64,000 nucleotides of DNA. Source: Perkinsela sp. CCAP 1560/9. Its lineage: Eukaryota; Protista; Euglenozoa: Kinetoplastea. The stretch is taken from the NCBI GenBank assembly GCA_965644495.1, contig CBFFSA010000009.1, positions 496,001-560,000 of the forward strand. The letters run 5' to 3'. The notes below the pieces were generated by a model, which worked only from the letters and a program-made list of their open reading frames with translations, did no database searches and had not been told where the DNA came from. Positions 52,292-63,712 of the stretch are shown in pieces; the first letter of the stretch is position 1, and each line of letters begins with the position of its first letter. The translations under genes were made by a program, and so were the position numbers.

Positions 52292-52464
52292 CGAGGATAA
52301 CACGGACAAAAACTTTTGTGTGTCGTAGAGTACAAATTTTAATTTTCACTTGAAGTACTTATACAGGTTTGTTTGGTGCCAAATCTAACGTGAAACACAT
52401 TATTAAAAAAGAAAATTGTCAAAGCAAACTTCATTAAAGGTACCCACCAGGATGCGTTTATTCA

Positions 52465-53169
52465 CTAGAACTCGTCCTCTTCCTCCTCATCCTCATCTTC
52501 CTCGTCCACGCCATCCACATCCTCACTCCCCGTTTCCGTGCTCTGTAATTTCCTCGCGTCATGCACGGCCTTCATCTCACGCTCCCTCTCCACGTGTTTC
52601 GGTATCCGCGGGTTGTTACACAAATCCAACGTTCGGTTACAGGTAAACGTCAAGAACGCCTCAAACGACTCCAGGGGGTCGTTCGTGTCCTCCCTCATTA
52701 AATCCGTCAGCTCCGCCTCGAATTCATCAAAATCTTCTTTACACAAACTCTCACAGACGGTTTTGGAGACCGCCCGGAGCGCCGCACGGTCCTCCGGGTT
52801 ATAAAACACCGCAGGCGGCAGGGAGTGATCTGTGGAGAAGACGCGCAAATTGCGCTGCGGGTCATACCGCAGGGCGCACTCATCGCCCATCTCCACACAG
52901 ATGTTCTCCATGATTTCAACCCCCTGGAGCTCGGAGCCGTAGTATTTTTTCCGTTTGATTTTGTTGCTTTTGTTGAGACGCCCGCTGGTTTGAAAGGTCG
53001 CGTCTTTTGTTTTCTCCAAGTGGGTCTGGAGCTCATCCCAGATTTTACGCGCGACGGTCTCGCAGATGGAACACTTGAGGTGGCGGTACTCGTGGAGCGG
53101 GTCAGCGGAGACGGGGGAGAGGGAGAGGGAGGTGAGGAGGAGAGGGAGGAGGAGGGAGGAGAGGGACAT
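52465..53169 (-). CDS. Canopy/saposin-like (DUF3456-type) ER protein
   Basis: Signal peptide, KCSIC, SEL...IMENIC, later Cys pairs, acidic tail ending EDEF (KDEL-like). Confidence 0.75.
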   Translation of the reverse strand: MSLSSLLLPLLLTSLSLSPVSADPLHEYRHLKCSICETVARKIWDELQTHLEKTKDATFQTSGRLNKSNKIKRKKYYGSELQGVEIMENICVEMGDECALRYDPQRNLRVFSTDHSLPPAVFYNPEDRAALRAVSKTVCESLCKEDFDEFEAELTDLMREDTNDPLESFEAFLTFTCNRTLDLCNNPRIPKHVEREREMKAVHDARKLQSTETGSEDVDGVDEEDEDEEEEDEF

Positions 53170-58547: not shown

Positions 58548-59330
58548 ATTGCGGTGGTTGTAAAACTACCGCTCTACACTCGATTATTGAAAAAAAAGTG
58601 AACAAAAACAGTGAAAATATAAAGAGGAACACAGTAATATAATAGAAGAAAAAAATATAAAAGGGGGCTCCGGTGGTCCAAAACTGAAAAAAAAAATTGA
58701 AAAAAATGGGGGGTCCATGGGGGGGGGTCCAGGGGGGGGGGTCCAGGGGGGGGGCATGGTCGAGCAAATTTTTTCGAAAAAATTAGTTTTCGAAAGAAAA
58801 ACGCAGAAAGGGTAGCCGGGGTCTTGGCGCGCATTTTCCACCCCCCTACCCGGGGGTGACCCCTCCGCGTATCCGCAGGACGGGTCCGCCAAGCTCGGAT
58901 TTTTTTTTGAAAAAAATTTCAACTTGGCGAAAAAAATGGCAAAAAAAATATTTTTCCAAAATCGTTTCCCCTATTGTATTTTGATAGTTTGGGACCTACA
59001 CTAGCTTTCTCCGCAGTTGTTTTCGCAAGGTATCACTTCTTCTAACGGTGGTGCGCACCTCAAAATGACCCATTTTTGACTAAAAAAGATGAAAAAGGAT
59101 TTTTCGGACCTAAAGGGGCATTTTTGTGTCGAAAGAATGGTATGGTTGGAGTCGCATTCTCTACCCAATACGTTCGGTAGGCTTCCATTCATGCCTACGA
59201 GTGATTTCCCACGCGCAAATGTCGGATTTAGTGCTCTGAGAGCAAAAATACCTGAAAATCACCCCATTTTTACCCGAAATTCGGCTATTTTTGCCTATAA
59301 TCTTTCCGTTTTCCAGGCTAAATTTTCTTT
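58548..59330. repeat. composite dispersed repeats including a G4-prone tract (58708-58755)
   Basis: Matches 38924-39110, 23160-23290 and 62836-63050. Confidence 0.7.
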
Positions 59331-59333
59331 TTA

Positions 59334-59428
59334 GGCTCTTCGTTAAACGCGGCGGTAGTTTTCAACTCGAAGCGCGCAGATTGAGTGACTTCTAAGTTGA
59401 AAACAACCACCGCGTTTAAAGAAGAGCC
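59334..59428. mobile_element. 95-bp palindromic MITE (copy 2)
   Basis: Homologous to 39392-39486. Confidence 0.85.
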
Positions 59429-59735
59429 TAAAAAGAATTTCATTGCTTTTAAGTCACGTTGAACAGTGCGTTTTGTGACATGTACCCCCTTTTTACTCAT
59501 TATCACTCCTTCGTTAACACGCTTGTTACCGGTCCCAAGCCCGGCACCGCCATATTCGGCGGAGTTTGAGGGTGAAGTTTTCAATATATCTATAGCACGA
59601 TTATAAACTAAATATAATTGAACTACTTGTTTCTAGTATCCAGTAGAACTACTACATTTAGCTCCATTTACCTAAACAATCTTACACGCCTGAAAATCTC
59701 ACGCATCAATTCGCTTGGTCCCGTCCTGGCAGTAC

Positions 59736-60100
59736 TTCATCCTCTATAACGAGGCCCATGGGCTCCGCACCCTTCGGGGTACCACCGCCCCAGCATTCGT
59801 GCTGGGAGGCCCATGGGCTCCGTGTTCTTCTTCGGGACACACTTGCCGTTGCATTATATATTCATCCTCTGTAACGAGGGTCATGGGCTCCGTACCCTTC
59901 GGGGTACCACCGCCCCAGCATTCGTGCTGGGAGGCCCATGGGCTCCGTGTCCTTCGGGACACACTTGCCGTTGCATTTATATATTCATCCTCTGTAACGA
60001 GGGTCATGGGCTCCGTACCCTTCGGGGTACCACCGCCCCAGCATTCGTGCTGGGAGGCCCATGGGCTCCGTGTCCTTCGGGACACACTTGCCGTTGCATT
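59736..60100. repeat. tandem array of three ~123-bp units, each with multiple TTCG-capped hairpins
   Basis: Units start at 59736, 59861 and 59984; hairpins GTACCC-TTCG-GGGTAC, CCCAGCA-TTCG-TGCTGGG, GTGTCC-TTCG-GGACAC. Confidence 0.95.
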
Positions 60101-60256
60101 TGCGCTATACACCCTCCTCTCCGGCATGTTTTTTTGACAATAAAGTGAAAACAGAATAAAAACAGAAGGGAGAGGGTGGGAAGTTGTGACGTGCCATGGC
60201 ATGCCTGGCACCTAGGGCTTGGTCCCGGTAACATGGTGCTTACGAAGGAGTGATAA

Positions 60257-60347
60257 TATCATGTTCAGGGGAACAGCAACTCCCCATTATCTCGGCGTAG
60301 TAAACACGCCTTGGCTTGCCTGGCACTACGATTGCCGAAAAAAAAAA
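60257..60347 (+). repeat. ~90-bp A-tailed structured element, identical to the inverted copy at 61875-61964
   Basis: Exact reverse-complement match by eye. Confidence 0.9.
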
Positions 60348-60409
60348 CCTTAGTTCCTTAATCCTCACTTGAGGCATGGTAACGGGAGTCCTCCCCCCTA
60401 AGAAGATTT

Positions 60410-61440
60410 GAAGTTGAAAAATATGGAGTGTTCGGGGGAGAGAAAACAAGGGGGGGGACTATTGTTGGTGCGTTATAGATCCCCTCATATGCAAGTATCG
60501 AAGCACACCGGACGTCTCGGGTTGACGTTCGAAATACGAATATGAAGTTGAAAAATATAGAGTGTTTGGGGGAGAGAAAACAAGGAGGGGGAGTATTGTT
60601 GGTGCACTATACCCCCATACGGAAGTATCGAGGCACACACCGGACGTCTCGGGTTGACGCTCGGAATACGGCTTTTCAGGATATCTCGCCTAGTAGGAAT
60701 ATTGAATCAGAAATTCAGACCGACGATAGTGAACGCGTTAGTGCTTATTCGGTGGAGAGAAAAAAAGAAAACTAGAAAAACAAAGCAAACGGTTGCTTTG
60801 CTTGATGCATTTATACCCGATTTCTTTGTTAACGAAGATTCATCATAAATACTGAAGGAACAACTTGGATTCTTTACATCAACACACCTAAAACATGGTT
60901 TACCATGGGGTATCAAATGTTGCACGGCATTGAAAAGTACCCAAAAATTTATTGAATGGATAAATTGTCCCCCTTTTTACGGGAAAACAAGGAAACTATC
61001 CTCCGGGGTTTGGTTACAACATTTATTAGAACTCGTGGAATGCGGGGTGCTACGTGTGGCACACGACTCTCGATCATGACCACGCTTATATTTACGTTAC
61101 TTTGAGGCATCAAAAGGGGAGGAATTGTCAAGAAGTATTGCGGATGGAACACCACTAAATGAGATGTGCAATCGCCCTCCTTGCTTGAATTTTCCAGCTA
61201 TCGCTGAAATTATCCATGTATAGAATAGAGAATTCCCCCAACGTAAACTTTTTATCCGCTGATATGCGACACTGGTTTCACCAGAGTGAAATACCATCAG
61301 AATCGGGGCGTACATCAGTTAGGAGATCGATGTGTAATGAGATCACGGAAATGGATGAACAGATAGAGAAACGTGAACATTCTTTTCGAATTTTCCATAT
61401 TAAATCTAAAGAAAACCCAGCGGACGGGTTGACTTGAGAA
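60410..61440 (+). pseudogene. heavily decayed DIRS/VIPER-type RT-RNase H, with a 134-bp tandem duplication at 60410-60670
   Basis: HIKSKENPADGLT (DIRS RNase H end); remnants resembling D(A)xxxF, LPMG and DAS motifs. Confidence 0.5.
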
Positions 61441-61874
61441 GAGCATAATTATGACATAAAAGAAGCACTCCTGAACTCAGCTCTAAGAGCTGGCGATGTA
61501 CATGTAGACCCTATGTAAGAATTATAGAAAGCGTAACTGGATGAAACAAACACACGAATCTAGAGTAATTAGTAAAATTTATGAGTGGATAGCATGAGGA
61601 ATGGCAAAGAAAGTAAATCCACTCCAAAAGAAAAAACGTTAACCAAAGGTTTACGCCAACCCTTTGTTCTATTGCACTCAAAGTTTTCTACTCCATTATG
61701 CAGTAAAATCTCCTTCGTATTTCTTCTTCCGAAAATTTTCTACAAATGCACCCTGGTCTCACACCCCAGCCTTCTCGACGCATGAGTAAAACCATGCTGC
61801 CGGGGAGATCACTCGGTTGTGGGAGCGGGCCCCTTAAGTGGGAAGCGACTGGGCTGCGAAATGAACCGAAAATA

Positions 61875-61964
61875 TTTTTTTTTCGGCAATCGTAGTGCCA
61901 GGCAAGCCAAGGCGTGTTTACTACGCCGAGATAATGGGGAGTTGCTGTTCCCCTGAACATGATA
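61875..61964 (-). repeat. inverted copy of 60257-60347
   Basis: Exact reverse-complement match by eye. Confidence 0.9.
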
Positions 61965-63093
61965 CCATGGACAGGGCATAGCAACTCCCTCAATCTCCCC
62001 GCAATGCATCTAGCGCTGCTTTCGGCACTCCAGCAAGGTCTTTTGGTGAAATAATGGTTACTATTTTTTTTCTGCGACGTAAAATATTTTTTTTCGGTGT
62101 AAATATTTTGGTTTTATTGGTTTCTTATGCTTTCAGATATTGCCTCACATATTTTACAGAAATATTAAATTATCGTGCAAGTTGCTTCTTTGGGACACCG
62201 TCCTCGAACCTCAGGCGCAATAATGTCTTACCTATAGGGGTCATCCCCCCTTTGGGGGACGGTACTTGGATTTTACCATGAAAGTTTAGAAAAAAAATAT
62301 TTCTGAAACTGATTTTTTTACAAGTTTTAAATGAAGCTAAAAACCCCGGGAACGTGCAGATCTCAAAATTGTGGACGACAAAGTGGTGCTGCAACCCCCA
62401 TGGGTCCCCGCACGCAAAAAATAAAGGGGGGTGCTTTATTCGTGTCGAGGGGTTTATAGGGGTGGGGTCATACCTTTCGAATGGGACAAAAGAACTACAA
62501 GTGTAGCGCCCAAGGAACAGAGCGCGCAAGTTATCAGGCACACATAAAAATGTATCTGTAGGATCAGTGAACGGAAAGGAAATTAATAAAGGAAGATAAT
62601 TGAAAAAAAGGTATAGTAGAGCCTTAGAAAGCAAAATGGAGAATTAAGGGACGGTTAATTACGGGACACTTTGTCCTGATGGGGGTGTCCCTTAATTAAC
62701 CCGTCCCGTAATAAAGCCACGCACTGTAAAAAGAACAATATTAGATATTGTTGTACACAAGAATCAGTCCTGTTTTTTGTGTTTTGGAGATCAAGATCGT
62801 ATCAGAAGACCGTCGTACACATAGAATCATCATTTTTCGGACCCAAAGAGGCCTTTTTGTGTCGAAAGAATGGTGTGCTTGGAGTCGTATTCTTTACCCA
62901 ATATGTTAGGTAGGCTTTGCTTCACCCCTACTAGTGATTTCCCACATCCAAATGTCGGATTTAGTGCTCTGAGAGCAAAAAAACCCGAAAATGTCCCTAT
63001 TTTTACCTGAAAATCGGCTATTTTTGGCTACAATCTTTCCGTTTTCTTCAGCTTTCCCGGCCAATCTTTCCGTTTTCTTCAGCTTTCCTTTTA

Positions 63094-63188
63094 GGCTCTT
63101 CGCTAAACACGGTGGCAGTTTTCAACGCGAAGCGCGCGGCATGAATGACTTCTAAGTTGAAAACAACTACCGCGTTTAACGAAGAGAC
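63094..63188. mobile_element. 95-bp palindromic MITE (copy 3)
   Basis: Homologous to 39392-39486. Confidence 0.85.
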
Positions 63189-63712
63189 TAAAAAACTTAT
63201 TACTAATAAGACTGGACAAATTTAGCTCGACTTTCTGTATTACAATCCGAGCGTCAAGGCATTGAAAAATTTCAACGAAACAGTACGATTCCAGTGCAAA
63301 TCATTGACAAAAAAAATAAAGGTAGATAATGGTAGGGAAAAATAAATATACTTACTTTAAAGTACCTATAATATAGTTTTATAGTTATTCGGACCCCTGC
63401 TAATTTTTTTAAGATACTTTTCGACTGCATTTCATCAAAATTTCATTTTACTAAAAGTAACTGGAACGTGTACATCTCAAAATTCTGAAAATGATAAGAG
63501 GGTGTATAAAATTGCTAAACTCCTGAATATCTAGGAGTGATCTTTTTCGGGGCACTGCATTTTTAATTTGAGCCGCACCCGACCGCACCCGGACGCGCCC
63601 GACCGCACCGAACCCGATTCACCCCTCTAATAGAAGATGTAGTACTGTACGAAAATCCATGTTTCGCCTGATGTGCGTCTCCGAACGCACCCCATACTTA
63701 ATCAAAAAAACC

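Follow-up and report, generated by a model that had tools for sequence, protein, structure and literature searches.

A tandem hairpin array forms the leader of a non-coding mobile element in Perkinsela

The tandem array at positions 59736-60101 of the window, by which we mean the whole stretch of 64,000 nucleotides of the Perkinsela sp. CCAP 1560/9 assembly that was analysed, is the family-specific hairpin leader of a non-coding and recently mobile element copy. With some reserve, we favour the reading in which a non-autonomous element, headed by a twister ribozyme and arranging its ends by a DIRS-type logic, has the array as its tandem-repeat leader, and in which the array serves as a cis-acting structured leader. 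The recurring order of a predicted twister, a hairpin array, and an inverted copy of the joined element ends (hereafter the junction copy) is the interesting part of the present results. If this reading is true, this retroelement type uses a twister to define the 5' end of its RNA and has three conserved cis-parts, of which the array is one; the twister ribozyme would then have a clear biological job in a eukaryote, and a natural system would become available for studying how ribozyme, structured spacer, and antisense arm follow one another in time.

A preliminary description of this DNA, made from its letters, had proposed an undescribed structured RNA element. Regarded as a gene, this proposal was not supported: a comparison of 10-kb pieces around the genomic loci showed that the 123-bp unit of the array occurs solely inside a dispersed element and never outside it. 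For annotation, this means that the striking hairpin arrays found here mark a transposon leader and not RNA genes.

The element, its insertion site, and its twister ribozyme

Three other copies (L032, L033, and L036) were ~95% identical to the element, with homology extending from 59497 to 61992-61996. In contigs of three public runs carrying the same organism label (X1-X3), 59495 was joined directly to 61989, with four letters fitting both sides, and CTCA is present at 59496-59499 and again at 61989-61992. The absence of the element from these contigs, together with CTCA at both ends, indicates that the 2,493 bp represent one insertion and that an unoccupied site exists. The parts of the element are as follows.

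59496-61992, + strand: whole mobile element, a non-coding copy of 2,493 bp plus the shared CTCA (copy homology, unoccupied-site contigs)
59496-59542, + strand: left terminus (A), containing the 5' strand of twister P1 and the cleavage site (copy comparison, inverted copy)
59510-59576, + strand: predicted type-P1 twister ribozyme with a P5 stem (Rfam RF03160, 22.3 bits, E 0.16)
59577-59735, + strand: AT-rich spacer between ribozyme and array, ending in CTTGGTCCCGTCCTGGCA (sequence)
59736-60101, + strand: leader array of three 123-bp hairpin clusters (Tandem Repeats Finder, folding, shuffles)
59892-59907, + strand: hairpin GTACCC-TTCG-GGGTAC of unit 2 (folding, shuffle test)
59914-59931, + strand: hairpin CCCAGCA-TTCG-TGCTGGG of unit 2 (folding, shuffle test)
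59947-59962, + strand: hairpin GTGTCC-TTCG-GGACAC of unit 2 (folding, unit comparison)
60215-60257, + strand: inverted copy of the left terminus (A'), the left half of the internal complementary region (self-comparison)
60257-60346, + strand: inverted copy of the right terminus (B'), the right half of the internal complementary region (self-comparison)
60347-61874, + strand: element body with no recognisable coding capacity (ORF and Pfam searches)
61875-61992, + strand: right terminus (B), ending in ...AACTCCCTCA (copy comparison)

Every copy starts with (N)CA followed at the boundary by TTATCACTCCTTCG, i.e. by TTATCAC, and every copy ends in CCCTCA. The dinucleotide CA is the sole sequence common to both ends across all copies, extended to CTCA in the window, so that no ordinary target duplication is present. 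Inverted likeness between the termini is confined to ~14 nt, GTAAACACGC. The internal stretch of the other copies, when read on the opposite strand, is ...AACTCCCTCA followed immediately by TTATCACTCCTTCGTAA, and thus has the right end joined to the left end. B' covers the full 118 nt in these copies; that of the window is 90 nt long and 100% complementary to 61875-61964, and the 28 nt that would adjoin the junction are missing from it. The full form of the junction was seen in runs X1 and X2, with a joint between 60256 and 61992 on opposite strands. The first 17 nt of A' are exactly complementary to the part of the element that would be severed by the ribozyme plus AA; since this complementarity covers the bases upstream of the twister cut and two more, it would fit a restoration of what the ribozyme removes.

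The body of the element contains no ORF longer than 101 aa, and ten ORF pieces (60346-61875) gave no meaningful Pfam match, which indicates that the window copy is a non-coding derivative. A reverse transcriptase-RNase H relic that had been supposed to adjoin the array found no Pfam support in the same ten pieces. Non-coding derivatives retain the twister, both termini, the junction copy, and at least one unit of the array. In the body, 133-135 bp are duplicated in tandem at 60406-60670 (60406-60538 and 60540-60670), as is also the case in L032 and L036. The last ~45 nt of the spacer at 59577-59735 are retained in old single-unit relics on contig 4. A CTTGG(T/C)...CCTGGCA motif occurs three times in the region of the leader and junction copy (59714-59732, 60206-60232, and 60310-60327), the first of which is also kept in the contig 4 relics.

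The predicted twister begins 13 nt inside the left boundary of the element, ~160 nt upstream of the array. Genome-wide, 45 matches to RF03160 were obtained at E<=0.5, whereas only one of the 14 control genomes had any match. None of them reached the Rfam gathering threshold of 67.2 bits (22.3 bits in the window, 39.1 bits for the best in the genome), and the extra P5 stem and short P1 lower these scores. An alignment of the window copy with nine other twisters of the same genome (n=10) contained 27 invariant columns, including GC, the CAAGC core, and GAGGG; the core TCCCAAGC and GAGGG were kept, and P1, P2, P4, and P5 covaried. The nucleotides expected to be conserved in a twister (UAA at the cleavage site, GC, UCCCAAGC, and GAGGG) were found, apart from one substitution at the cleavage site of the window copy. 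In the helices of this alignment, 94% of cells were paired and 13 of the 24 pairs were changed on both sides; none of 500 shuffles performed as well, and slid controls reached 48% at most. Judging from this conservation and covariation, the twister motifs of this genome are genuine.

Two conserved positions are substituted in the window copy, one adjoining the cleavage site (U for A beside the cleavage U) and one in P2, and this copy may have lost cleavage; the twister of the sister copy L032 has the canonical TAAACAC...GTGT. The preliminary description had considered a ribozyme, and one is indeed predicted in the element; however, it is a twister located 160 nt upstream of the array and is not part of the repeat unit. 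The right terminus has an inverted partial look-alike of the 5' part of the twister, GTAAACACGCC...CCTGGCAC (60296-60327 and 61894-61925), which may have been left by a former inverted terminal repeat or by a second ribozyme.

Regarding the DNA to the left of the element, the element-free contigs of the public runs are unlike the window to the left of 59437 as well, with upstream letters that occur nowhere in the 64-kb window, which indicates that the strain in the runs is structurally different from the assembly at this position. A near-perfect palindromic repeat of 113 bp, with 43-nt arms of 93% complementarity, is located at 59325-59437 and also at 63085-63194 and in L031, L037, and L038. 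It looks like a MITE-like foldback element, and in the public runs its word depth exceeds that of the neighbouring sequence by a factor of ~100. It is also the source of weak Rfam matches to microRNA precursors at 59322-59442 (MIR2593, 35 bits).

Structure and genomic copies of the hairpin array

Tandem Repeats Finder (TRF) reported a period of 123 bp and 3.0 copies at 59736-60101 with 96% matches and a score of 670, bearing out the array of three units of ~123 bp that had been described earlier. This is by far the strongest array of the 64-kb window, in which only two arrays reach TRF scores like those of the arrays at twister loci. Each unit contains three perfect hairpins capped by TTCG, with the stems GTACCC/GGGTAC, CCCAGCA/TGCTGGG, and GTGTCC/GGACAC, and a further stem, CCTC-TGTAAC-GAGG; all four of these had been pointed out before, and all were confirmed in the units. 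At least three perfect hairpins were present in just 12 of 5000 dinucleotide shuffles of the unit. The predicted fold energy of one unit was -56 kcal/mol on the + strand (z -4.3) and -53.9 kcal/mol on the - strand (z -3.7).

The unit is composed of two duplicated sub-modules that have in common a 16-nt lead, GAGGnnCATGGGCTCC. Their 6-bp stems differ at exactly two positions per arm, both of which are compensated (A-T to G-C and C-G to T-A), and the chance of two such compensated pairs is ~3e-5; the earlier observation of compensatory stems that keep TTCG was therefore correct. A GT/CC difference between the sub-modules had also been described, and this holds in units 2 and 3 of the window, to which the GT variant of the 16-mer is confined, but not elsewhere, as all other units genome-wide have CC. 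The outer two pairs of the first hairpin are present solely in the GT variant. In most other copies, the third hairpin has GGGCAC in place of GGACAC, which produces a U.G wobble on the + strand only.

The 123-bp unit recurs at no fewer than eight other loci of the 21-Mb Perkinsela genome, in arrays of 1 to 12 or more units, among which are variant units of 119 bp and partial ones. Three old single-unit relics on contig 4 retain 77-78% identity and have lost the hairpin pairings. Wherever the left end of the element survives, the unit occupies the same position. The range in unit number indicates that the dose of the array is not fixed, and we propose that it shifts freely through slippage or unequal exchange. 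A pattern scan of metagenomes for relatives beyond this genome found none; all 42 matches were single chance matches in GC-rich bacterial coding DNA, none of which had complementary stems.

The compensation between stems is one between paralogous hairpins inside a single unit and was not seen between units of different genomic copies. Among 17 units from nine loci, no covariation was detected (86.5% of cells paired vs 87.3% in shuffles), and changes that keep a wobble pair were about as frequent as those that break a pair; covariation within five other arrays did not exceed that of shuffles. Dead transposon copies diverge mostly by neutral decay once inserted, and the lack of covariation among them is therefore neutral on function in the active lineage. 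The selection on structure that the preliminary description had suggested is favoured by the compensation between paralogous hairpins and the recurrence of hairpin arrays in other families, but not by the copies of the window family, which did not covary. Retention of the array by non-coding derivatives, the UUCG reading of TTCG in the ribozyme sense, and the better folding of the sense strand in other arrays also speak for it, and the modest fold z-scores of those arrays speak against it. Taken together, the evidence for selection on the hairpins is mixed, and any function that they may have is one that we infer from the sequence.

Related families in the same genome

Of the 45 twister matches, the best 12 were fetched. 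A tandem array was present on the ribozyme strand in all 12 and started 2-346 nt downstream of the twister. The units at these loci were 22, 25, 28, 63, 78, and 83 nt in length. Counting the array of the window, the arrays at twister loci represent about seven families, and no fewer than five of their unit sequences are unrelated to one another. The 78-nt unit consists of two 39-nt halves with the hairpins GTCC-TTCG-GGAC and GTTC-TTCG-GAAC, which differ by one compensated pair, and its family is related to that of the window in the twister and in a segment comprising a hairpin plus tail. In both families that have TTCG, it reads UUCG in the ribozyme sense. In the arrays of other families, the sense strand folds better because the stems use G.U pairs (for example, -17 kcal/mol for the antisense strand vs -47 kcal/mol), with z-scores of -0.8 to -3. 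Some elements of the 78-nt family (L047:4433-5076, L048, and L050) have a second array further down the leader, before the inverted left terminus, with an 83-nt unit that contains three hairpins and a long-range stem.

The left terminus recurs in inverted form after the array in nine of the 12 loci, in addition to the window. A B'/B pair directly follows this inverted left terminus in three families; L046 and L048 have the layout of the window element. The order of twister, array, and inverted copy of the joined ends is common to seven families that differ in sequence. In most families, homology between copies begins 13-21 nt before the twister, which places the ribozyme at the head of the element. 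A tyrosine-recombinase match (PF00589) lies 3-4.2 kb downstream of seven other twisters, on the same strand, with ~0.3 expected by chance. Among the matches listed, RVT_1 and RT_RNaseH were located beside other recombinase genes and not beside the seven twister-linked ones.

At one locus (L051), an ORF for a Tc1/mariner-type transposase at 1125-1940 on the - strand (contig 10 near 52,300-53,100; DDE_3 1.5e-15, HTH_Tnp_Tc3_2 4.8e-8) lies ~0.5 kb downstream of a twister and a 25-nt array, on the same strand as these.

Possible roles of the array and relationships with known systems

In the mechanism that we envisage for the preferred role of a cis-acting structured leader, the RNA of the element would be read through from upstream, and the twister would sever the upstream RNA together with the first ~20 nt of the element. 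The internal junction copy would later template the return of the lost bases, in a manner similar to the internal complementary region of DIRS-1. In the C(UUCG)G sense, the array would fold into consecutive self-contained hairpins, which would separate the ribozyme from its antisense partner A' in the RNA. It may act as an inert, locally folding spacer, such that the ribozyme can fold and cut while A' is still to be made. Also or instead, it may be a repeated handle for element proteins that are supplied in trans. Folding of the L032 leader was predicted to join A to A' by 41 pairs and to leave ~80% of the pairs of the array local; once the downstream antisense arm is present, it pairs with the left terminus and with much of the twister. 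We suggest, tentatively and as a more specific possibility, that the twister, the hairpin array, and the inverted junction copy constitute a functional leader module of an undescribed kinetoplastid clade of recombinase retroelements, in which the array is selected as fast-folding hairpins that delay the antisense arm and insulate the ribozyme from it, such that the cut comes first and the fold then locks, with the array perhaps also serving as a packaging handle and the junction copy restoring the removed bases.

The main rival accepts the same leader context and regards the array as functionless, namely, as a minisatellite that arose by template slippage or unequal exchange, with hairpins as by-products of, for example, palindrome-correcting template switches. 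We consider this explanation possible, if doubtful. Unit numbers that vary from 1 to 12 or more, partial units, the absence of covariation among copies and within arrays, the pairings lost from the contig 4 relics, and the modest fold z-scores of the other arrays are all consistent with it. However, an array was found at the same place in all 12 of the best twister loci, across about seven families and at least five unrelated units, and was retained by non-coding derivatives. The two compensated pairs of the window unit (P ~3e-5) and the one in the 78-nt family would, moreover, need a process that preserves hairpins, and the orientation of TTCG is always that of the ribozyme sense.

A smaller rival, which we consider improbable, places the role of the array at the level of DNA: its palindromes would bind the recombinase or another protein of the element, or CGAAG mini-hairpins would compact the minus-strand cDNA so that its 3' end folds back on the junction copy. 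Single-stranded cDNA intermediates occur in DIRS-1 (PMC7192593), and the array is situated between two sequences that must meet on the cDNA. With their perfect Watson-Crick palindromes, the hairpins of the window family fold equally well on either strand (z -4.5 and -5.0), whereas in other families the reliance of the stems on G.U pairs makes the antisense strand fold much worse, at the -17 vs -47 kcal/mol given above. Typical recombinase core sites are also unlike stems of 6-7 bp with 4-nt spacers.

Two further explanations, together with that of a coding repeat, were rejected. In the first of these, which we regard as very improbable, A and A' delimit a DNA transposon of the cut-and-paste type, or a MITE, and the array represents its subterminal repeats. 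The twister and array are indeed enclosed by an inverted repeat formed by A (59496-59542) and A' (60215-60257), and the transposase ORF at L051 lies downstream of one twister-array locus; however, the unoccupied site lacks the entire 2,493 bp (59496-61988) and not the A-A' interval, homology between copies continues to 61992, the ends are not inverted repeats of each other and have only CA in common with no ordinary target duplication, no copy consisting of the A-A' interval by itself was encountered, and A' abuts an inverted right end that a model of terminal inverted repeats leaves unexplained. The least credible explanation is a free-standing structured RNA gene or a new multimeric self-cleaving ribozyme of a retrozyme- or satellite-like kind, which the preliminary description had listed among its options: the very stable hairpins, the three UUCG loops per unit, and the tandem arrangement invite it, but an Rfam scan of the array and 3 kb around it (E<=10, both strands) matched no family on the array, the unit is confined to this element in a variable number that includes 119-bp and partial forms, the single ribozyme of the system lies outside the repeat, and the metagenome scan revealed no relatives. 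The coding repeat had been considered because 123 = 3 x 41 and three frames are open, but the 119-bp and partial units break the frame.

Returning to the preferred reading of a cis-acting leader in an element with DIRS-type ends, the suggestion in the preliminary description of a cis-element belonging to an adjacent DIRS/VIPER-like relic came closest among its options, in that the array is internal to a mobile element with a DIRS-type junction copy, although the reverse transcriptase-RNase H relic itself lacked Pfam support. DIRS1-like elements carry, near their 3' end, an internal complementary region, the halves of which are complementary to the termini (PMC3266345), and in DIRS-1 this region is essential for retrotransposition and the proteins act in trans (PMC7192593). 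The present element similarly has two abutting internal halves, one complementary to its left terminus and the other to its right, with a short junction where they meet; 2-4 nt of this junction are also found in the target, there is no ordinary target duplication, and tyrosine-recombinase matches are located downstream of related heads. Plausibly, and by analogy with DIRS1-like elements, the non-coding copies were moved in trans. In contrast to DIRS1-like elements, the present element has its junction copy just after the leader, 5' of a 1.5-kb body, instead of near the 3' end; it has no clear long inverted terminal repeats, its 5' end would be set by a twister, its leader contains a hairpin array, and the window copy is gene-less.

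Ribozymes in retrotransposons were limited to HDV-like ribozymes (R2 and L1Tc) and hammerheads (Penelope-like elements and retrozymes) in a 2019 review (PMC6765202). As in R2, L1Tc, and other retroelements with a 5' ribozyme, a ribozyme at the start of the present element would free its RNA from a read-through transcript, which fits the polycistronic transcription of kinetoplastids. The differences are that the class is here twister, which is in no retrotransposon of that review (PMC6765202), that the cut would lie inside the element such that its first bases are lost and need restoring, and that the element is of a recombinase-based type and not a LINE or PLE. Unlike a retrozyme or a ribozyme-bearing satellite, it has no ribozyme per unit, and the twister is single and outside the array.

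Mouse L1 monomers form tandem arrays in the 5' region of a retrotransposon and act as promoters. The arrays of the present families resemble them in being family-specific 5' tandem units of variable number that differ between subfamilies while their position is kept, and differ from them in being downstream of the processed 5' end predicted for the RNA and in being built of stable hairpins. The VIPER/TATE elements are recombinase-based retroelements of the same host group with short non-autonomous derivatives (SIRE); they have split direct repeats (A1 ... B1 A2 B2), with no ribozyme or leader array reported (PMC6681497), whereas the internal copies of the ends are inverted here. Full-text searches found no literature linking twister ribozymes to DIRS/tyrosine-recombinase elements, such retrotransposons, or kinetoplastids.

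The retroelement load of this genome is very heavy for 21 Mb, with more than 150 RVT_1 matches over 95 bits, many of which lie in open frames of 1000-2800 aa, and with 53 Phage_integrase and 144 RT_RNaseH matches genome-wide. Pairs of a recombinase followed by a reverse transcriptase on one strand are common, as in contig 4 (495450/493933) and contig 9 (758536/757016).
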